From Oopsacas minuta (lineage: Eukaryota; Animalia; Porifera): a stretch of 64,000 bases of DNA. Below, one piece after another: positions 8,406 through 60,065 of the stretch; position 1 is the stretch's first letter; each line of letters begins with the position of its first letter. The stretch lies in the NCBI GenBank assembly GCA_024704765.1, contig JAKMXF010000312.1, positions 1-64,000 of the forward strand, read 5' to 3'. The notes under the pieces are model-generated. The model did no database searches and was not told the DNA's origin. It was given only the letters and a program-made list of their open reading frames with translations. The translations under genes and the position numbers were made by a program.

Positions 8406-10883
8406 CTAAGCGTCCAGTGAGGGGTAAGATAGAGGTACAGGGGGTAGCAGGGGGCTAGAGACTCCGCTACAAAATCCTGTGTTAACACATACATCTGCTG
8501 GGTCGACATACTGTCCAACTTTACGAATAATAGTCTTTAGACTGTCCACAACCTCCCAGCACTCATCCTTCTGCATCATATTACATACAGTCTGTACCAT
8601 ATACTCCACGAGGTTAATAGTTAGGTTAGCAGCCTTCATTTGTACAGCTATTACTCCAGCCACTAGTTTGCACAGTACACAGGTGTTGATGGAGTCTTGC
8701 ATTCCATACAATAGAAGATTCTGAGACTCTCGCGGCAGCCAGAGTAGACGGCCAGTAACCTTACTCTTACATTGACCAACAGCTGAGCAAGCTTTTGGGG
8801 GACTACCGTGATGTAATTTGTATTTTTGGAGATGCGTGTGTGCCATTTTCTTAGCAGCAGACTCACACACGGACTTGTAGCCTTTAGGAACCTATAACAC
8901 AATAATAAACGTATATCTTTAAAGCATGACGTCATATTACCTCTTTACATGTGTGCTCCAGCTCTCTACGGTCGTGTCCAGGCAAGTGAGGAAGGTGTGG
9001 CAGATGCAGGTGTTTCTCTTCGTAGTTAGAGGCAACTAAGAACTCACAAGCCATGCACTGGGTCTGATCAGGGGGAGGGGGAGGAGGAGGAGGTTTGTTC
9101 TTGTGTTTGCCTAGAAGGTGTCGATGGCCCGGAGCTGAAGAGAAGGGAGCTAGTGCCTCCCGTCCTATCCAGTAGTAGGCGCTGTGAAAATCAAAGTTAG
9201 ATTTTATTTCTTGAGAAGAGTTAAGACGACAGCAACCGATATAAGAGTGACAGATCTCGTAAGGATGTTTACCCGCTTTAATCAGCTTTGTTATAATTGT
9301 GTCATATTTCTGTCTACAGCTTTTACAATTTATGTTATTGAAGTTAGAGGGTAGGAGGGAACAGCTGTTGTTGAATACTCTATTCTTCTACGGTAGGATA
9401 CATTATATAATTATAATTACTAAATAGAACAGTTCTTACTTACTTTATAGTCTCCACTCTCATTCAGGATTACTGGTGCTAATTGTCCTACCATATAAGT
9501 ACACCAGGAGCAGGTTAATTCCTCCAGATTATTCTCCACCAGTTCCTCAGGTCTAAACACGTCTACTGAGCTTATCAGCTGTCTGGTATCAGCTGTTATC
9601 TTCCACTCACTAGAATTATTGCAGCCTGGCAAAGCATTGCATAGAGAGGTTGTACCAATAAGAGAACCAAACTACAAACAATTAATTCAACAGATTTAGT
9701 CCTGTCCTGTCAGTTACTATTCTTACCTTAGATATCAAGAATGCTCCATAAGTGCTAACAAAAGTATAGCATTGAGAAGATAAACCGCTAGGAAGAGTCT
9801 GACAAGCCTTCTCGATAAGAGATACTATGTTAGAGTCCATATCTGAGTCCTTAAGGATCTCTGTTAGATACCCAAAAGCTGTCTGGCACAGGAAGCATAT
9901 GTTACTGTCTACCTGGCCAGGTTTGTGCTCCAAATTCCTCGCACTCACTGAACTACCTAAAGTATTCAAATTAACATTACATTCCATCTGCTTAGTTATG
10001 TAGTCAATTGTTCTAATACATAGGAATCTCTATAGCTAATTAAATTAAAGTTCAACTTACTACAAACATTAAACAGAGCACACAAAGCCGCAGGCTCAAC
10101 TTTCTGTAGAATTTCCAACAGAACATCGCTATATTTATCTTTCAATTCTTCGCACTGTTTCTGTAGATCCTCATCATCCTTCCCTCCTCCTTCCTGAGGT
10201 AATCCCTCGCAGAGATTATTCATCATATCCTCAAATGAGTCACTGCTCACTGAGTTCATACTGCCCTGAGCTTGGTTAACTATTACTTTACATAAAATGC
10301 AATACTTAGAACCCATGGGCAATCTATTCCCCCTTGACCTGTCGGCACAAGAATCTAGTTTGTTACAAGCTCCACTACGTGCTCCTGCCCCTAGAAGGTA
10401 TGAAAATAGAACCGATGCTCCATCTACACAACTATCCACGTCTTCTCGACACTTGTCATTCCTAGCAGCAAGCTCCGTTAGAGTGGGAGAGGGAAGCCAG
10501 GCCTGTGTATCTCTCCTGAGCTCTATCGCGGCCATCTGACAGAGCGTGCACTCGGAAAGTTTCATTTGATCTCCGGATTGGAATGGAGAGTATGACTGAC
10601 AGAGATTGAGGAGAGGACACAGTTCATACGCTAGAGTACTGGTTATGTCCATGACAGAAGGGAGATATCCTTCCACCAGGAACTTACAGACCAGGGCCAC
10701 ATCCTCCAGATTATCTAAACACATTTCCTGTAGTAATGCTCCGGCTAGCTCCAGGGACGCGTCTGATTGTATGGCGGTCTGTACCTCTGTGACCATCTCC
10801 TCACAGACCGAGCAGAGGGACTCATTGTAATTCCCCCACAGGAGAGGCGCCGTCAGTAACAGAAGAAATATGGAAAGACGCAT
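8406..10883 (-). CDS. Prosaposin-like multi-saposin-B precursor (signal peptide + about 7 SapB domains)
   Basis: Signal peptide MRLSIFLLLLTAPLLWG, then repeated CxxC...C...C modules: LCSVCEEMV, CTLCQMAA, CILCKVIV, CFLCQTAF, CSWCTYMV, CMACEFLV, CVLCKLVA. Confidence 0.87.
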
Positions 10884-51193: not shown

Positions 51194-53259
51194 ATGCCAG
51201 GTAACAGGAACCTATTCCCCATCAGAGCTCAGCCAGGGCTTAAGATAGCCTTCTCTGTTATGACGTCATATCTCCTGTACGTCCCCTCATGGAGCAGGAG
51301 GACTATAGAATTGTTCTTCTCATTTCAGAGTCTGTTGTTGTTGACATTATGGGTGTTACTACACTTCACGTTCCTAACCTATCCAACTATCTGTCTTAAT
51401 CAATCACACCTAATTCCTCTTATGAATAACTTGTCTGGTACAGACGTGTTAAGGTTATCATTATGGATAAATTACACTATTCCTATCGTATCATATGGTT
51501 AGTTGTTTGTTTGTTTGTTTGTTTGTTTGTTTGTTTCATTGGTTTCCAATTTAATTCAGCCATTTGTTTACAGTTCCTTCAGATTTGGTATGTCATAAAC
51601 CGAACTACAAAACAATAATACAAACATATTCACAATCAACATGTCCTATGAATATTGATACAGGACAACACAACAGGTTAACTTCAATTATTATTATTAT
51701 TACGTATTGTTTATCTATTTGTTGTTATTGTTGTTTGAATGTAGTGAGAGTATGCTCTATAACCTACTGATAGCTGAATACCAGCTGTCACAACAGGAAC
51801 TATCAGATGAATCAGCTGTTCCTATCCTTCAAGAACCAGAACTATCACCTCATAATCATTCACACTTACTAGTATCAACACTGTGAGTATTGTTACTATA
51901 TTACTGTTGTTATTCACTTGTTTACATGTTTGTTTACAGGCTAGAGAGTATGGAATTCTCCTCGTTTGAAGGTGTCTTGAAGTTGCCACATTCCATAAGA
52001 GACACATTAGGAATTAACACTTCTAGAGTAGATATAGATTATTTTACAGATGACTGTATGCAGGTAGCATTAGGATTCCTACCAGTAGCTGCTCTAGTCG
52101 GATATGATGAGGTTTGTGCCACATTATACACCCTATGCCACATTATACATCCTATGCCACCTTATAACCACTTAATACCTTGTAGTTACTCATGCAATCC
52201 TTCCGTTACCTCAGCAAGTATCACTTTAACTCTACAGGGTATGTACAGGATCTGAGTACTCGGGAGATATACAGATTCTATTCTGCATATTTTGACAGAA
52301 TGCTGTTACTATTTGCATTCTTTCCAATTCTAATTATAGCTCTAATGAGCTCTAACTTATTGTGGTTCTGTCACGTTATTATACATCACATGGCTATATT
52401 TATGAGATTTACAGCTGATCATATCGCCCCTATTTTCATGTCACTCGCTACCTTGACACTCCTCTACGCTCTGTTTGGGATATTTGCTGTTATGACAGGT
52501 CTCCTTAATGATGACGGTCCCCTCTGTCTGATTGTAATGCTGGCTATATTCAGTGCAGACCAGTACTATCTGGTGTTCTGTAATCATCCTGTGTCCAAGA
52601 GACAATGGCCGAAGTTCTTCTATTTGTTCTTGTTTGTGTTTGTTGCTTACTATCTCAGGTTTAATGGTCAGCTGTTTCTATACGCTTTCCTGACATGTTA
52701 CACCTTATTAACCCTCTCTATGGTATGTGAGTATAGTAAACTCCTGTTATATCGAAGCTTAAGGGACCGTGATAATTATACCAATGGAAATGTGACGGTT
52801 TGGGAGCATATTTGTTTAACACTTCGATATATCCGTGTTCTATATAATGAGAGTTGACTGTATTTATTATTTACATGTTATATAGGTGTTATGTGATTAA
52901 TCCTTAGGTATACTTCATGCACAGCTGGGAATTAGTACTGGTGGAGCATGCTATGAGACAAGCAGGCCTGACTATAAATACAAATTCTAATAATAGATTT
53001 AAAACAGCATTCCTGAAGTACCAAGTGTTGCTAGGACAGATTAATAGACCAGTTCATCAGTTGATACAAGTTGAAATACAGGTTTGATAATGTGGTAGAA
53101 ATTGGACCAAATTGGTCCAATTCCTGCTTGACAGGAGGCTAATTTGGGTCAGTTATTTTATTGGTTGATTTGTAGGTGGGTCCAGTAATGGCGCCACCGC
53201 CACCTCCACCACCTCCACCACCTGTACCACAAGCGAGACACAACTCCACACAGCAGTAA
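51194..53259 (+). CDS. TMEM259: Membralin (TMEM259)
   Basis: RRTIELFF..LLHFTF..PTICL, EFSSFEGVLKL, VGYDE|LLMQSFR, ADQYYLVFC...SKRQWPKFFYLF...YYLRFNGQ, YFMHSWEL. Confidence 0.88.
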
Positions 53260-53613
53260 CCTTTAAGAAATCAGCCTTCCTGAAGAGCTACATTCCATCC
53301 AGATATATCTGTTGCTATAGATACATTGTATATTTATTCTATCAATCTGGAACCATCTGTGCCACATTTTGTAGAACTAATTCTATTATTTAATTAGCCA
53401 ATAAATCCTTTGCAATCATCCCATTTGTATTATTCTATTTTTAGTAACAAATTACATTAATATTGAGAAGTAGAATGTGTTGTTTGTTTGTTATTTGTTC
53501 AAGGATTTGACGCTTATAACATACAACAAACAAACAAACAAACACAAATAGATAGGTAGACTACCCTAGCAACACCATTTGAATTAGGAATGTAGCATAT
53601 TAATAGCCATTAT

Positions 53614-56600
53614 ATGTGCGCAAAGAGACTAGCTCTCCCCCAGGAGATCCATCATCCCCTGCATAAAGGTTACATTAACAAGCAGGGAGGTTCTCACAAG
53701 AACTGGAAAACAAGATACGCTATCCTCTATCCACACCTACTTGTTTACTACGTACACTCTGGTAAATACGAGTATGATATAAAGAGAGGGTGTTTAGAGG
53801 TAAATAACAACAGGACACTTTAGCTTATATGAAATATAAACAAATATACTAATTAGTTCCGTAAATAGTTTCGTATTACAATTGCTCCATCACACATTAG
53901 TTAAGAAATTGAATTGAATACTATATTTCATATCCTAACAACCATTAGGCTTTATGGAATGCTGTATCGATTACTCCCTATATATGAGAGTCTACCAGTT
54001 CATTCTACAGTATGTGATACCGTGCCATAGGATAGGGGAATTTCTATTGACGTCATTAGTCAACTTTAAGCCACATTATTTGTCAGATATTTAAGTTGTC
54101 CACTTGTTTATATTTCAAGAGAAACACTTTTTCCCTTGTTTACGTTTGTTAGAGTTTGTTTACTAGTTTGTTTATTTATTTAGAACCGTAAGAATCACGT
54201 TATATTACACGGAGCACAGGTCGTATGCTCCAGGAGCTCTCTAGATAAACTACAATTTGCATTCACTATTATTGTAACAGCTACAGACAACAAACGAACG
54301 TAAATAATAATAATAATAATAGAATAATATGCATAACTCTGTCAGCTGATTGGTTGCTATTGTCAGGAGAGCAGCTGATATTCATTTGTATTATATTCAT
54401 ACACACATGGTTACATACCTATTCTATAAATAGACGTGTTAGCCCAATCAAACTTGTTTCAGCGCCCTAATTAGCCCTCTTATTGTTGTTATTTACAATT
54501 ATAATAGCTCCAGGGGATAGGTACATGGGACGGTAGGACCCCAAGAATTTCAAAGGCCCGATCCTCTAAACCAGCGGTTCCAGTTTGGGAACAGCTGCCC
54601 TATACTTATATCTGCTGTTAATAGCATAATTAGTAGCTGAAACAAGTAATTAATAATCCTATTACCCCTGATAATTAGATTAGTCTATTTATAGCACATA
54701 CGTCATTGCTAACAGCAGTATAATAGAGAGAGATCTTTGGATGGATAAAGTGAATGAGGCTATTAATGGGGGCGCTACCCCTGACACTATTAAGGACACT
54801 AAAGTTCATCCTAAACTCAAACTATTAACTAAAGAGTCAACACTCAGACTACTGGATTCGTTAGTTATTTGTTTGTTTGTTTATTTGTTTGTTTGTTTAT
54901 TTGTTGTTGTTTACAGAAATACAGCGGATTCAGTTAGGAATGCTATGGTAGATAAAGATAGTGAGTCTGATATTGATGATACAGATTCAGAGAATGAGGT
55001 ATACTGATTATTTAGACAATCCATTACGGTCTTATTATATGTATATTTCACACCTAGAATGAGCCACATAGACGTTCAGCAAAGAGTCAGGCATTAGCCA
55101 TTAAAGCACACTCTGTAGCACAACCTAGCGTAAGCGCAGTAACACCGGATGCATGTCTATCTACCACAGCTTCTAATATGCCGAGACCTATGCTACAGAA
55201 GGAAGCTATGACTATGAATCCTGATGTTAGTAATACGAATGATGAATCAGTAATATCTCTAGATGACTCACATCTGAAGCATAGACATGTCACTGGTAAA
55301 CAAACAAACAAACAAACAAACAAACAAATAACAATAAAATGTATTCTGTAGATCAAGTCTCAGATGATGTGATACCATCCTGTCCTGGTGTTGAGATTAT
55401 ACTAACCTGGTCAACACATGTACCAAATACTAGTTAGTTGTTTATAATTAGTCAACACCTTAATATGCTATTTATAGTATCATAACTGTCCTGTAGAGGT
55501 TATGCTGGGTAAAGAAGGGTTCCTGTACAAACAGGGGGGTAAGCATAAGACCTGGAAATATCGTTACGTCATAGCTGTACCCGGGAGATTAGCTTACTAC
55601 AAATCTAAACCACATGGACCTGGCGTGAGTTATAAGTGTTTGTTGTTGTTTTCTTGTTTTATTATTGTTTACTTAGGATAAAGCTATGGGTATTGTGAAG
55701 CTTAAGAACATAGCATGTTCCTCTAAACCTGGTTAGTTCATATTAATCATATGAATAATCTAAACACCTATTTATGTAACACTTCTAGGTATTGCCAAGT
55801 TTCCTAACCTGTTTGAGATAACTAGTAACAGTCAATGGAATAAGAGAGGGTATGACCATGGATATAGTTATATTAAAGTTCTATTTATAGTAACATTCTA
55901 TTTTAGGACATATGTATTCTCAGCTGTATCAGGAGATGAAAGAACTGAGTGGATGGAGGCCCTACAGGTGTTAGAATTAATCATATGTAGAAATATTGAT
56001 CCTCATAACATTGAGTACTAGCATCTCTGTATTGTTTGTGTAGTAATCTCCTAGACAGGAGGTAATTGAGTTTACGTGTTAAGTGGTCCAATTGTGTCCT
56101 CAGTGACACTTCCTCCTCTCTGAGACCACTCAGCTGTTCCACTAGATCTGAGTACTTCCTTGACACCTGAATATAATTCCTTTTAATTGGTGTATTGTCT
56201 CTGAAAGATTCATCTAGTTGACATTCCAAATACTTTAATCTGTAACCAAGTTGTTCACATCTCTCTTCCTTCTTCTTCAACCTTTCATCCTATTAGATAA
56301 TTTAATTAGGGATCCCTGTCCTCCTGCCCCCTGTCCAACTCACCTTGTCCCTCAGAGCAGATCTCATATGTAACTTCTCATCATTTCTCATTTCTAAGCT
56401 GTGACACAAATCATTTTGACCACTTTCTGCCACTTTTTTAAGTTTCCGCTCGATGACGCCTATTTTATCATCTAGTTCTGTCACAAATATTAAATATTTG
56501 TGTATCTGTACATCTATAGGTGTTAGAATTGTGTCGCTATTTGATCTCATTTATAACAGTCATAACATTATTTGTTTATATATATGCATATATATATCAG

Positions 56601-58094
56601 TCATCTGATTGGTTACTGGCGTCTGTTATTCTCTTAATACATGTATGTAATCAGGTGCTAGGAGGAAACTATAAGGCTCACATAGAGGAACTGACGGAGC
56701 TTGAGACCCATAGAGACCCTATTGGTCCTGAATCCAGAGCAAAATCATTTTCAGATGCAATTACTTCCTCTATAGACGAGGACGATTATGTACCCAAGAA
56801 GGAACCGGTACTAGAGACAGTACCAGAGGGTGCAGCCCCTGAACTCAATATTGTACCCTGCATAGAGCCTCTTAGTAAGTTCTTTACATAAAAAACCTGT
56901 ATTGAATCAGCTGATTAATGCATTTATTCTATTTATAGCCACTAAGACTAAGAGACATGTAGAAGGAAACTATGACCTGGATATATCATGTAAGTATATT
57001 GTTTTTGTTTTTGTTGTTGTTTACTTGTTATTCCTCAGATATCACCAGTAACATACTAGTGATGTCATTCCCTTACTCTAAGGAAGAACTTTATAATACC
57101 CAGAAAGGAAGAAATGATATTGATATTGTCGAGAAGTAAGTTGTTTATTTGTTTATTTATTTGTTTACCTGTTGTTGTGTTTAGGTTCCTGAATGAGAAG
57201 TACAACAAATCTTACAGAGTGTACAATTTGTAAGCTAGCAAATAATAATAAATAATCAGCTGATTACTTCTGTATACCTTAGGTGTAAAGAGATGACATA
57301 CCCAAACACAAGATTCAATGGGAACATAGGATTGTTCCCATATGAGGATCATTGTCCCCCTCCCCTCTTGATGTTAGACATCTTCATTAAGGATATGGTA
57401 TGTAGCCACTTATGTGCCACCTTACTGCCACTTTTAACACCTTTTTTGTGTTTTATGTAGCAAAATTGGATGGGAGCAGATTCTAATAATGTAGCTGTCA
57501 TTCACTGTAATTCAGGGAAGGGACGATCAGGCTGTATGGTAGCTAGCTATCTCATATATGCCAAGTAAGTACACGCTTAGATAGGTGTTATATACTTCAC
57601 ACCTAGGTCCAAATGGGCTGGTTCCGATGTGACCAGTATGTTATATTTTAATTAACACCTATTTCCATAGAGAGATGTTCTATAATGAAGCTATTACTCA
57701 GTTTAATACCAATAGAATAAACTTTGGAAGAGTGAGTATATTTAATCCCTATATATACACATTTTCACACCTTTATAACCTCTCATCTCCTAGGGCCTTG
57801 TAATACCCAGTCACCTTAGATACATAAAATATGTAGACAGGATCCGTCTTAATCCAACAGAGTACTCATTCGATAGAAATGATGAGAGAACAATAGAATC
57901 TATACAAATAAAAGTACCTAATGACGCAGGACCAGATTGGAGTATGTACATTCCTTTGTTATTATACGGTAACTATGGTGTGTATTATGTTTGTTTGTTT
58001 ATTTAGAACCATTTGTTACTATTGTGTCTATGGATTCTAACTTGGAGATGTTCAACTCGGTTGTAAGTATAATTCATTGTTTCTAAATTTAGTA

Positions 58095-58147
<53 letters not shown>

Positions 58148-58651
58148 GAAAGAGGGAGTAACTGCTAAGAACACAGTATCTAAAGTAAGTCTGTTTGTTG
58201 TTTGTTTATTTGTTTTGTTTACTTGTTAATTTATTTGTTTACTTGTTTAGCTTATCACAATTCGTGACATAAATCTTGTCATCAAGAATAACATACAAGT
58301 AAATATTTGGGACTTTGATGACAATTTGGATAGTAATGTAAGTACAGTCACATATATATATATATCTGCCACTTGACACCTTGTATAACTTCTGACTATA
58401 TTTGAACTGAAACTATAGAGGTGTTAATACCATATATATATATCCAATAGCTATCTCTAGATGCCTATCTATTCATTCACTCAGCATTCATTACAGATAA
58501 TGTTTTGTTATTCAAGAAGTGTGATGTTAGTTATATATTGATTAGGTGTTAAATATATATTTATATATTCTATTTATAGCTCGACAAGTTGTATAAAAGC
58601 AAGGTACAAGGATTCTCAATTAGTATCCATTTCGCACCTCTCGCCTCCTAG
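53614..58651 (+). CDS. PH-PH-PTEN-like phosphatase (two PH domains + PTP + C2), about 20 exons
   Basis: PH1 KGYINKQGGSHKNWKTRY...ERDLWMDKVNEAI; PH2 EGFLYKQGGKHKTWKYRY...ERTEWMEALQ; PTEN module YDLDIS|YITSNILVMSFP, YRVYNL|CKE, FPYEDHCPP, VIHCNSGKGRSG, GLVIPSHLRY, FKKCD|LDKLYKSK. Confidence 0.8.
55981..56550 (-). CDS. Nested antisense coiled-coil protein gene (2 exons) inside an intron of the PH-PH-PTEN gene
   Basis: ATG at 56550. A GACAAG|GTGAGT donor and a TCTAATAG|GAT acceptor join two ORFs in phase 0, giving about 170 aa of heptad-rich sequence that ends in TGA at 55981. Confidence 0.72.
58095..58147. repeat. (ATT)n microsatellite in a PTEN-C2 intron
   Basis: Perfect run read directly. 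Confidence 0.93.
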
Positions 58652-58802
58652 TCCCCTCGCCCCCTTAGGTACCCATATGTATACCCCTGTGTCTGCTAGC
58701 TTATACCTGTATATATTGAACTTGTGTACAAACTACATTTATTATTTTCAATCTATCTAAACAATAACAACTCTAAAAATATAGTAAAAACAAACAAACA
58801 AA

Positions 58803-60065
58803 TTATTTTGTCACTTTCAAGGGTGGTGCAACAACACTGTCCATCGGTTCTACCTCAGCAACCACTTCTGGTTCTTGGAATGCAGTTACTTCTTGCCACA
58901 CCAAACTCTTCCAATCCTTTTTAGTGTAATTTTCCACATCCATAATATCTTCAACTATTTTCTTGTGAGGAGGGTTCACGTCCTTTTCACTGTACCAATC
59001 CTTGAAATAGGGGTGTTTCAAGGCGGACGCCACCGTGATCCTCTCCTCTACCGGTATTACCAATAGATGTTCTAGTAAATCACGCGCCAAATGGTTTAGT
59101 CCCGTTTCCTCATGTGAGTAGCATAAAAATCTTTGGTTTGGAAATATGGATTCTATGTGGGGCTTTTCATGATATGGTCTTCTCCTGCAGTATTCTTGAA
59201 CCGTAGGCACCAGTTGTGCGAAATATGCCTCATTCGGTGTCCCCCTCACCTCACATACCTTGTTCCACTGGTCTACATAATCCTGTCCCTTCATACAAGG
59301 ATGTCCGAGTATGAGCTCTGCCATTATACACCCCACAGACCACACGTCTACTTCACAATGATACGGGAGACCTACTATGATCTCTGGAGCCCGATAATAC
59401 CTCGTGACGACATAGGGTGTGAATTGACTCTCAATATTTTCTGAGTGTATCATCGATCGGGCTAAACCGAAGTCCAATATCTTAAGACACACAACATTAA
59501 GTCCTTCCTTATCAAACTTAACAACTATATTGGATGGCTTCATGTCTCTGTGTGCTACTCCACATAAATGCATGTACAGTACAGCACTAAGCATTTGATA
59601 TACCATTCCTTGGAGGGTTCTGTGGTCAAATGGGTTCTCCATTTTACGGATTAGAGAGGCCAGGTTGTACTTAGCTAGGTCCATAACCACGTAGATCTCC
59701 TCAAAGCTCTCAATACTTGGATCAGGTGTGAAGAGGTTTAGCATTGAGATTATATTTGGGTGACATAAATTCTTCATAAGGTACAGCTCCCTATAGGTCC
59801 GTTTAGCGTTGGGGTCTGACGAAAAACCCTTTATAAACTTTTTAATCGCGACCCGCTCCCCTCGCACCTGGTCCTCAGCTGACACCACATGGCCCTGAGC
59901 GCCAAATCCTATCTTCTTTTCAACTTTATAGCGAGAAGGGATCGTGAAGGGAATAGAGGTGATTGTCTCCGTATGGAATCCTGGCTTCATTGTATTATCA
60001 GATAAGATGGTCAATATCAAATTGCATTTATAGAAATATTGTGAGCATACTCTTGGTGGTGTCAT
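58803..60065 (-). CDS. JNK: JNK-like stress-activated MAP kinase, intronless and divergent
   Basis: GFGAQGHV, VAIKK, AKRTYREL, HRDMKPSNIVV, DFGLAR, activation loop TPYVVTRYYRAPE, GQDYVDQWNKV. The start may be the second ATG at 59990. Confidence 0.9.
   Translation of the reverse strand: MTPPRVCSQYFYKCNLILTILSDNTMKPGFHTETITSIPFTIPSRYKVEKKIGFGAQGHVVSAEDQVRGERVAIKKFIKGFSSDPNAKRTYRELYLMKNLCHPNIISMLNLFTPDPSIESFEEIYVVMDLAKYNLASLIRKMENPFDHRTLQGMVYQMLSAVLYMHLCGVAHRDMKPSNIVVKFDKEGLNVVCLKILDFGLARSMIHSENIESQFTPYVVTRYYRAPEIIVGLPYHCEVDVWSVGCIMAELILGHPCMKGQDYVDQWNKVCEVRGTPNEAYFAQLVPTVQEYCRRRPYHEKPHIESIFPNQRFLCYSHEETGLNHLARDLLEHLLVIPVEERITVASALKHPYFKDWYSEKDVNPPHKKIVEDIMDVENYTKKDWKSLVWQEVTAFQEPEVVAEVEPMDSVVAPPLKVTK

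Follow-up and report, generated by a model that had tools for sequence, protein, structure and literature searches.

Structure of the LOD99_5934 gene

The window, a stretch of 64,000 nucleotides of DNA from the glass sponge Oopsacas minuta (contig JAKMXF010000312.1), contains LOD99_5934, one gene on the + strand at 53614-58651. It has 23 exons and encodes a protein of 779 amino acids. Its exon structure, with one reading frame throughout, shows that this gene encodes a PH domain (PH1), a 170-amino-acid linker, a second PH domain (PH2), a 73-amino-acid linker, a PTEN-type phosphatase and a PTEN-type C2 domain, in that order. A gene model built by hand is identical, letter by letter, to the public protein LOD99_5934; the PH-PTEN fusion is therefore already present in the database, where the record is titled "hypothetical protein" (Oopsacas minuta). 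The gene is expressed as spliced RNA in the cDNA-like run X4, with GT..AG joints or loose ends for at least 12 of the 22 introns. Apart from the antisense gene within intron 10, the features described in this section are all on the + strand.

PH1 (amino acids 16-118; 53614-54859), the first of two PH stretches found with Pfam, is spread across three exons with two intervening introns of about 390 nt each. Exon 1 (53614-53799) begins with the ATG at 53614 and includes the basic motif KQGGSHKNWKTRY at 53680-53718. It is followed by exon 2 (54184-54299), and the exon 1-2 junction is found in cDNA contigs. The end of PH1 lies in exon 3 (54695-54859). The inter-PH linker (54917-55432) occupies exons 4-6. 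Exon 4 (54917-54998) codes for an acidic Ser/Thr cluster, SESDIDDTDSE. The joint between exon 4 and exon 5 (55058-55295) and the joint between exon 6 (55352-55432) and exon 7 are both backed by loose ends in cDNA contigs, and a cDNA loose end marks the end of exon 6 at 55432. PH2 (amino acids 292-392; 55497-55967) is spread across four exons, 7 (55497-55624), 8 (55677-55731), 9 (55789-55849) and 10 (55907-55967), with a Pfam PH match over residues 295-391. Its basic motif, KQGGKHKTWKYRY, is at 55529-55567 in exon 7.

Intron 10 (55968-56654) is a GT..AG intron of 687 nt that contains an antisense gene. Exon 11 (56655-56874) encodes the linker between PH2 and the phosphatase (amino acids 392-464), and its junction with exon 12 is present in cDNA contigs. 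The phosphatase domain (amino acids 465-650; 56939-57941) is encoded by exons 12-15 (56939-56989, 57039-57135, 57185-57229 and 57283-57397) and exons 16-18 (57461-57564, 57671-57731 and 57794-57941), and several of the junctions between them are visible in cDNA contigs. The P-loop HCNSGKGR is at 57503-57526; YEDHCPP lies in exon 15 and GLVIPSHLRY in exon 18. The C2 domain (amino acids ~655-779; 57900-58651) comprises the end of exon 18 and exons 19-23 (58007-58062, 58149-58184, 58251-58337, 58451-58525 and 58580-58651). Translation stops at a TAG codon (58649-58651), and 15-20 residues follow the last C2 strand, up to the end ...HFAPLAS. The C-terminal phospho-regulated tail and PDZ-binding motif that animal PTEN orthologues have are missing.

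The joint between the PH and PTEN halves

Exon 10 ends with WMEALQ, whose final base is 55967, and a phase-0 GT donor follows at 55968. Reading through this donor gives 17 more codons and then a stop at 56019-56021. Exon 11 begins at 56655 (VLGGNYK) after CAG, also in phase 0. Upstream of this acceptor there is no in-frame ATG in O. minuta, and in the PTEN half no in-frame Met occurs before its residue 99, which lies within the phosphatase fold. On inspection of the sequence, the motifs, donor, read-through stop and acceptor all lie where the sequence-only reading had placed them. The cDNA-like reads reach a depth of about 25,000 in the final PH2 bin and about 31,000 in exon 11, with 275-473 over intron 10 between them; the depth falls about 60-fold at the donor at 55968 (from about 25,000 to about 390) and recovers at the acceptor at 56655. 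O. minuta's own 55967^56655 junction is thus placed by depth edges and annotation, and it is absent among the best 15 of the 23 joints listed.

The joint can be read directly in a relative. P0003 is an uninterrupted ORF of 664 amino acids on a Logan contig from another species, and it runs from PH2 into the PTP-C2 module (...AEWLDCLE|ILGGDCK...). Ahead of the first Met, this frame extends into PH1 sequence resembling exon 2. The relative's intron-free contig does not contain the intron 10 stretch. Contig L001 is taken as RNA solely because it lacks introns and begins at the exon-2 acceptor. The loci L002-L004 have the same gene order, with a phase-0 GT after W[IM]EAL[QE] and CAG before [VI]LGG. 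Relatives keep the whole arrangement, in three more genomic loci and in a single spliced contig.

Within intron 10, on the - strand, lies an antisense gene (55981-56550) for a coiled-coil-like protein of 170 amino acids, as seen from a cDNA contig and an open frame. Its exons are 56550-56343 and 56288-55981, with an intron at 56289-56342. The CT..AC joint 56288/56343 has a depth of 389 in the cDNA contig, and the frame is open across it. The protein is 47-57% identical to its counterpart at the same place in L002-L004. The gene is missing from the NCBI gene list for the contig. It is context for the locus and lies outside the PH-PTEN protein. A possible alternative first exon in the same intron, from an ATG at 56453 to a donor-like site at 56519, was rejected: it is 67 nt long, is out of phase and has low RNA depth.

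An expressed and conserved antisense gene that nearly fills the gap raises the question of whether the public fused model is an annotation error, and the region instead holds three genes: a PH-PH adaptor ending at 56019-56021, the antisense gene and a separate PTEN. The absence of the joint from the best 15 of 23 listed would agree with this, as would an in-frame ATG eight codons ahead of the acceptor in L002. However, O. minuta, L003 and L004 have no usable ATG, and the candidate at 56453-56519 is the sole ATG-to-donor combination within intron 10. Read depth between the two halves is about 1-2% of that of the flanking exons and is explained by the spliced contig from the minus strand, the relative's contig passes through the joint in one ORF, and donor, acceptor and phase are kept in all loci. 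We consider three separate genes highly improbable. The matching annotation, the depth edges, the relative's spliced contig and the conserved splice sites and phase bear out the earlier proposal that the two halves are joined, and support their being one gene in O. minuta.

Relatives of the phosphatase and PH domains

The best PDB match of the full protein is human PTEN (E 1.4e-38, residues 464-646), followed by Ci-VSP (6e-29), TPTE2 (2e-23) and auxilin (2e-16). By these E-values, PTEN proper is ahead of VSP and auxilin as the nearest relative. A two-sequence profile aligns over positions 4-302, with PTP and C2 in one stretch, to Ci-VSP, TPTE2 and auxilin. Structure matches to PTEN-family clusters in the Atlas have TM values of 0.58-0.73 over about 320 residues. 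In O. minuta the Pfam matches to DSPc (31.4 bits) and PTEN_C2 (26.0 bits, cut-off 27.1) are both slightly under their cut-offs; these are cleared by the orthologue P0003 (36.2 and 36.4 bits). The C2 region alone had no match to the PDB by phmmer, and AlphaFold2 on the two-sequence alignment gave a mean pLDDT of 32, too low to use.

The P-loop HCNSGKGRSG, opposite HCKAGKGRTG in PTEN, does not vary among five loci; it keeps the catalytic Cys and Arg and has an Asn where PTEN has Lys125. Judged from the alignment, this substitution could alter substrate preference. The general-acid Asp loop YEDHCPP is opposite FEDHNPP in PTEN. The TI-loop, the segment that widens the pocket in PTEN (KGVTIPSQRRY), reads GLVIPSHLRY opposite GVTIPSQRRY, with Ile, Pro, Ser, Arg and Tyr kept, Thr replaced by Val/Ser and Gln by His. 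HCNSGKGRSG, [FY]EDHC, PSHLRY and KTKR[HY] are invariant across the five loci, as are the Cys, the Arg, the residue equivalent to Lys128 and, in the WPD-like loop, the Asp and His. The description of the C-terminal half as a complete PTEN-type PTP and C2 module thus holds, on the alignment with PTEN and the invariance of the catalytic residues, and the module looks catalytically complete.

Compared with human PTEN (PDB 1d5r, 7jvx), the O. minuta protein has the same PTP-type phosphatase and PTEN-type C2, the Cys, Arg and second Lys of the CX5R P-loop, the Asp-His pair of the WPD-like loop, the IPS..RY residues of the TI-loop and, directly ahead of the domain, a basic patch. It differs in carrying two PH domains on an N-terminal extension of about 465 residues, in its P-loop HCNSGKGR and in lacking the C-terminal regulatory tail and PDZ motif. 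The loop that we equate with PTEN's basic CBR3 loop, by manual alignment to the PTEN sequence, is acidic in O. minuta.

The PH domains are found by the Pfam profile PF00169 as two stretches in the full protein (E 2e-31, 109 bits), and exon 1 (28.1 bits) and exon 7 (30.0 bits) each exceed the cut-off of 25.1 on their own. Both contain the basic beta1-beta2 motif K-x-small-x(6-11)-K/R-x-R-hydrophobic (KQGGSHKNWKTRYA, KQGGKHKTWKYRYV), invariant in the five loci, and the two KQGGxHKxWKxR[YF] motifs are likewise invariant. The best PDB match of PH2 is the Akt2 PH domain (E 8.9e-10), aligned over the full length of PH2; other matches are the pleckstrin C-terminal PH domain, GRP1, TAPP1 and DAPP1, and these closest solved relatives are all known as 3-phosphoinositide binders. 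PH1 matches solved PH domains weakly (E ~7e-4). PH1 and PH2 are 33% identical (E 1e-15). Since PH1 and PH2 are more alike than either is like a solved PH domain, internal duplication is the probable origin of the pair. TAPP and pleckstrin are also more distant from both than the two are from one another, which suggests a local duplication and not a captured TAPP-like gene.

The sequence-only reading had taken the basic signature as an established mark of PIP3/PI(3,4)P2-binding PH domains. The signature is present in both domains, as a putative mark of such binding. The KxG...K/RxR motif is found in PH domains of many specificities, and the KxGG...KxWKxR type is said, in work attributed to Dowler and colleagues in 2000, to select phosphoinositide binders of varied specificity (PI3P, PI4P, PI(3,4)P2 and PIP3). 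The basic motif of PH1 or PH2 alone does not fix lipid specificity. PH2 keeps the equivalents of Lys14, Arg23 and Arg25 of Akt2 and of the beta-3 Tyr of GRP1. The further headgroup contacts are Akt R86 and GRP1 R305, K343, N354 and H355. In tool alignments the positions of Akt R86 and GRP1 R305 are opposite Tyr and Met in PH2, and so, unlike in Akt and GRP1, are non-basic; these further contacts are opposite Tyr/Met or outside the aligned part, with Lys/Arg nearby.

The SESDIDDTDSE cluster is identical in all five loci, and the remainder of the inter-PH linker has diverged. Alone, the acidic linker had no match in the PDB, so the likeness that SESDIDDTDSENENEP may have to the phosphorylated tail of PTEN is a suggestion rather than a result.

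Possible function and distribution

Ordinary PTEN, among the most studied of signalling enzymes, has its product PI(4,5)P2 to keep it at the membrane and a phosphorylated tail to gate it, and finding the membrane, through a PI(4,5)P2-binding N-terminus, C2 loops and an inhibitory tail, is central to its function. With moderate confidence, we favour as the best explanation a fused gene whose product is an active phosphoinositide 3-phosphatase, targeted by its PH pair via phosphoinositides and limiting PI3K signals. The C-terminal half is predicted to be the active enzyme, and the PH pair is predicted to give membrane targeting through phosphoinositide binding. PIP3 or PI(3,4)P2 would be the most likely PH ligand because PH2 has Akt, GRP1, TAPP1 and DAPP1 as its nearest solved relatives. 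Such binding would bring the enzyme to its own substrate, where it would limit PI3K signals. The missing C-terminal tail and the acidic CBR3-equivalent loop would fit PH domains that have taken over targeting and regulation. PIP3/PI(3,4)P2 binding and negative feedback, described earlier as a 'self-contained PI3K feedback module', are what we infer.

It is possible, though we think it doubtful, that the PH domains instead bind PI(4,5)P2, PI4P, PI3P or a protein and serve as a constitutive anchor without sensing substrate. Such an anchor would replace the PI(4,5)P2-binding N-terminus, basic C2 loop and tail of ordinary PTEN, so that no feedback logic is needed. The many specificities of the KxG...K/RxR motif agree with this, as do the two Akt/GRP1 contact positions not retained in PH2, the weak likeness of PH1 to any solved PH domain and the absence of a tail after C2. 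Against it, the closest solved relatives of PH2 are all known as 3-phosphoinositide binders, and conservation extends to the phosphatase's N-terminal basic patch, KTKR[HY]; the ordinary anchor has therefore not simply been lost. Another reading would make the phosphatase half a protein phosphatase, or a catalytically altered scaffold like tensin or auxilin, brought to membranes by the PH domains. The change of Lys125 to Asn (HCNSGKGR versus HCKAGKGR), the TI-loop changes of Thr to Val/Ser and Gln to His and the DSPc and PTEN_C2 scores slightly under the cut-offs would agree with such a protein. However, the scaffold members tensin-1 and auxilin have lost catalytic residues, whereas here the Cys, Arg, Lys128 equivalent and WPD-like loop Asp/His are invariant in five loci, and the score with PTEN is far above that with auxilin. 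We regard this reading as improbable.

The preferred reading, an active 3-phosphatase targeted by its PH pair, has a bolder form, which we think unlikely. Glass sponges are syncytial animals, and their PTEN targeting may have been rebuilt: a duplicated Akt-like PH domain would recruit the enzyme to its substrate, one protein would act as a negative-feedback controller of PI3K, SESDIDDTDSE would substitute for the tail, and this protein may be the animals' only PTEN.

Other proteins combine these parts differently. Ci-VSP and TPTE2, the second-best solved matches, also have a sensor N-terminal to a PTEN-like PTP-C2 module. Their sensor is a four-helix voltage sensor, whereas that of the sponge is a soluble PH pair, and PTEN scores above VSP. 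TAPP1/2 and pleckstrin have two PH domains with a long linker between them, and TAPP1 and pleckstrin are among the PDB matches, but these proteins have no catalytic domain. PH2 is joined to a phosphatase, unlike the PH domains of Akt, GRP1, TAPP1 and DAPP1, which are found with a kinase, a Sec7 domain or in an adaptor. A PH-fold module is fused to a phosphoinositide phosphatase in OCRL/INPP5B, SHIP and the myotubularins with PH-GRAM; these differ in catalytic fold or family (5-phosphatases and myotubularins), and none of them is known to contain a PTP-C2 of the PTEN type. A PTEN-like PTP-C2 is fused to other domains in tensin, auxilin/GAK and plant class II formins. Their partners are SH2-PTB, a kinase or J domain and FH1-FH2, on other sides of the module, and most of these modules have lost phosphatase activity, whereas the O. 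minuta protein retains the catalytic residues. The significance of the new combination is limited, as its parts are familiar, PH and lipid-phosphatase combinations are known in other enzyme families and the function is predicted. Besides the voltage sensor, SH2-PTB, the kinase/J domain and formin, the PTEN module nevertheless gains a fifth kind of partner in the PH pair, and the gene is a case of domain shuffling within the PI3K pathway in an early-branching animal lineage. A natural PTEN of this kind, with its PH pair and without a tail, would show how a PIP3 phosphatase behaves when it is recruited by the type of phosphoinositide sensor found in Akt, its antagonist.

The architecture had been proposed as possibly lineage-limited, and the searches agree: a non-exhaustive survey found no PH+PTEN protein outside this sponge group. 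Word-index protein searches returned only P0003 and P0004 and missed ordinary PTENs as well, and are therefore too insensitive as a survey of architectures. Atlas feature and structure searches, with three families per cluster and clusters of at least 50 members, contained no PH+PTEN_C2 cluster, and a JGI metagenome scan gave no match. In a literature search we found no description of a PTEN-family protein with a PH-PH-PTEN arrangement, and PTEN, PI3K and Akt go unmentioned in the O. minuta genome paper. The architecture is annotated once, as a hypothetical protein in the same genome, and so is not widely annotated. As far as searched, it appears confined to this sponge group. Orthologues P0001-P0003 were recovered by an HMMER search with exon 11, and, besides O. 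minuta, at least three genomes or transcriptomes of relatives contain the PH-PH-PTEN gene.

The PH-PTEN gene and the joint across intron 10

The exons of the PH-PTEN gene were assembled by their GT..AG ends and the open frame, within positions 53000-59500. There are 23 of them on the + strand, from the ATG at 53614 to the TAG at 58651. Exon 6 was set at 55352-55432, because a contig of the cDNA-like sequencing run X4 ends at 55432 and runs on into the first letters of exon 7. The corrected 779-amino-acid product is identical at every residue to a public protein (P0004), whose gene spans 53614-58651 of contig JAKMXF010000312.1 (GCA_024704765.1); the window is the first 64 kb of this contig. NCBI lists this protein as 'hypothetical protein LOD99_5934 [Oopsacas minuta]', its UniRef name is PIP3 3-phosphatase. 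The fused model is already in a public database, but unnamed.

Whether this is a single gene is the main question, since a gene on the minus strand takes up nearly all of the 687-nt gap between exons 10 and 11 (55968-56654). The profile of X4 is that of cDNA, with a depth of 8,000-31,000 in bins with exons and 0-600 in introns; among the joints listed, at least 12 of the 22 introns have GT..AG joints or matching loose ends. Depth is about 24,700 before the gap (bin 55792-55975), 389, 275 and 473 in three bins within it, and 31,500 past it (bin 56712-56895); the bin 56528-56711 has 9,900, as expected with coverage starting at 56655. The low coverage there comes from a contig in which 55947-56288 is joined to 56343-56434. 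This joint has CT..AC ends, which identify the contig as a transcript spliced on the minus strand. Among the X4 joints listed, 55967^56655 is absent; in O. minuta it is supported by the depth edges and by the public annotation. The PTEN half has its first Met only within the fold.

A search with exon 11 against a library of 1.84 billion proteins gave three orthologues, P0001, P0002 and P0003. The species carrying their loci (L001-L004) were called relatives by synteny and 47-89% exon identity. P0003 (664 aa) is found on L001, a 3.5-kb Logan contig of run SRR29297749. Its unbroken open reading frame begins at the end of PH1, covers PH2 (...AEWLDCLE) and leads directly into ILGGDCKAQIEEL... and then the phosphatase (PTP) and C2 domains. 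Upstream of its first Met the frame holds exon-2-like PH1 sequence, which is interrupted precisely at the boundary of exons 1 and 2, following ...ACAG. The contig is best read as spliced RNA, since it lacks all of 21 introns and ends in an acceptor. Through P0001 and P0002, three genomic loci were located in two other assemblies (L002; L003/L004). The order at each is that of O. minuta: PH1 exons, linker, PH2 exons, antisense gene, exon 11, PTEN exons and a convergent kinase gene. In all three PH2 ends in W[IM]EAL[QE] followed by a phase-0 GT, and exon 11 starts with [VI]LGG after CAG.

The depth edges, the P0003 reading frame through the joint and the conserved splice sites and phase bear out the sequence-only reading that the PH and PTEN halves belong to one gene, and we regard their fusion as very nearly certain. 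The same reading held that exon 11 has no start codon of its own, and no in-frame ATG is present upstream of it in O. minuta, L003 or L004. L002 has an in-frame ATG 8 codons before the exon 11 acceptor (9998-10024, MTAAILSQ followed by ILGG), which is absent from the other loci. P0001 was called as a protein because of this ATG, which is probably incidental.

Domain matches and conserved residues

PH-PTEN is a single gene that is expressed, is under conservation and keeps its catalytic and PH motifs intact. In Pfam the full protein matches PH in two stretches (E 2e-31, best stretch 295-391), PTP-SAK (30.9 bits, cut-off 27), DSPc (31.4 bits, cut-off 33.5) and PTEN_C2 (26.0 bits, cut-off 27.1). 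The orthologue P0003 is above the cut-off for both DSPc (36.2) and PTEN_C2 (36.4). Exon 1 and exon 7, each taken alone, match PH at 28.1 and 30.0 bits (cut-off 25.1), and the P-loop exon alone matches DSP-type phosphatases.

Residues 464-646 match human PTEN (1.4e-38), Ci-VSP (6e-29), TPTE2 (2e-23) and auxilin (2e-16) in the PDB. A two-sequence profile of the C-terminal half aligns with Ci-VSP, TPTE2 and auxilin in a single stretch over PTP and C2; the C2 region alone gave no match in the PDB. The ESM Atlas model of LOD99_5934 can be superposed on clusters of the PTEN family for about 320 residues (TM 0.58-0.73 by target). The best PDB match of PH2 is the Akt2 PH domain (8.9e-10, full length), followed by the C-terminal PH domain of pleckstrin, GRP1/cytohesin-3, Akt1, TAPP1 and DAPP1. 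PH1 has weak matches to ARHGAP25, SWAP-70, pleckstrin-2, DAPP1 and GRP1 (E 7e-4 to 9e-3). The two PH domains share 33% identity (53.9 bits, E 1e-15). No solved PH domain is as close to either one as they are to each other, which suggests an internal duplication.

Invariant in the five loci (O. minuta and L001-L004) are the basic motif KQGGxHKxWKxR[YF] in both PH copies, the P-loop HCNSGKGRSG, [FY]EDHC, PSHLRY and a basic KTKR[HY] immediately before the phosphatase. In the PDB alignment Cys124, Arg130, Lys128, His123, Asp92 and His93 of human PTEN are shared, whereas Lys125 is replaced by Asn in the P-loop, and in the TI-loop Thr167 is replaced by Val or Ser and Gln171 by His. The sponge protein ends right after C2, so the phosphorylated tail and PDZ motif of PTEN are missing. 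The acidic WDFDDNLDS is presumably the counterpart of the basic CBR3 loop of PTEN, a lead from a manual alignment with PTEN.

An acidic Ser/Thr cluster in the inter-PH linker, SESDIDDTDSE (54971-54998, exon 4), is also invariant in the five loci, whereas the rest of the linker is divergent. It resembles a cluster of CK2-type phosphorylation sites and is reminiscent of the CK2-phosphorylated regulatory tail of PTEN. A search with the cluster gave no support for a link to that tail.

Proposed function of the PH pair

PTEN-like modules are known with a voltage sensor, SH2-PTB, a kinase/J domain or a formin as partners; we know of no described partner that is a PH pair. No other PH+PTEN protein was found in the Atlas or in JGI metagenomes, and none is described in the literature searched. 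Word-index protein searches gave none besides P0003 and P0004, but their sensitivity is too low for this to carry weight. PTEN, PI3K and Akt are all unmentioned in the O. minuta genome paper.

The C-terminal half is predicted to be a lipid 3-phosphatase, and the PH pair would target it to the membrane. If the pair recruits the phosphatase to its substrate, the protein would exert negative feedback on PI3K. This is the most likely reading, because the solved PH domains nearest to PH2 are binders of PIP3 or PI(3,4)P2. A serious rival is that the PH pair is a constitutive anchor to another lipid, since the basic motif is reportedly found in PH domains with a wide range of specificities, and two positions that make contacts in Akt and GRP1 are not conserved in PH2.

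The nested antisense gene and flanking sequence

The antisense gene within intron 10 (55981-56550, - strand) has two exons and encodes 170 amino acids. The distance from its stop codon to the exon 10 donor is 13 nt, and that from its ATG to the exon 11 acceptor is 104 nt. The gene is expressed, as a spliced contig at a depth of about 390, and occurs at the same place in L002-L004 with 47-57% identity; nothing similar was found in the L001 contig. NCBI does not list it among the genes of the contig. The protein looks like a coiled coil, and its sole Pfam hint is SKA2 (E 0.004, below the cut-off). The 13-mer AGGTGTTAGAATT is present on the + strand across the exon 10 donor (55966-55978) and again within intron 10, where the antisense gene has its first codons (56518-56530). 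It had zero copies in 100 of 100 shuffles of the window. The repeat may have arisen by chance in AT-rich DNA, may be a cryptic donor, or may mark how the nested gene came to be there.

A membralin gene and one resembling alpha-SNAP lie upstream of the PH-PTEN gene. Downstream, an intronless protein kinase gene (58803-60065, - strand, 420 aa, Pfam Pkinase) is convergent on it, with the two stop codons 152 nt apart. In the relative, both genes were assembled into the single contig L001, as they would be if their 3' ends overlap. Many short introns of the PH-PTEN gene are mostly (TTTG)n/(CAAA)n or (ATT)n tracts (54861-54912, 55297-55330, 57140-57180, 58098-58146 and 58195-58245). Contigs of the DNA runs break at several of these tracts (54852/54913, 55291/55340 and 58086/58225).
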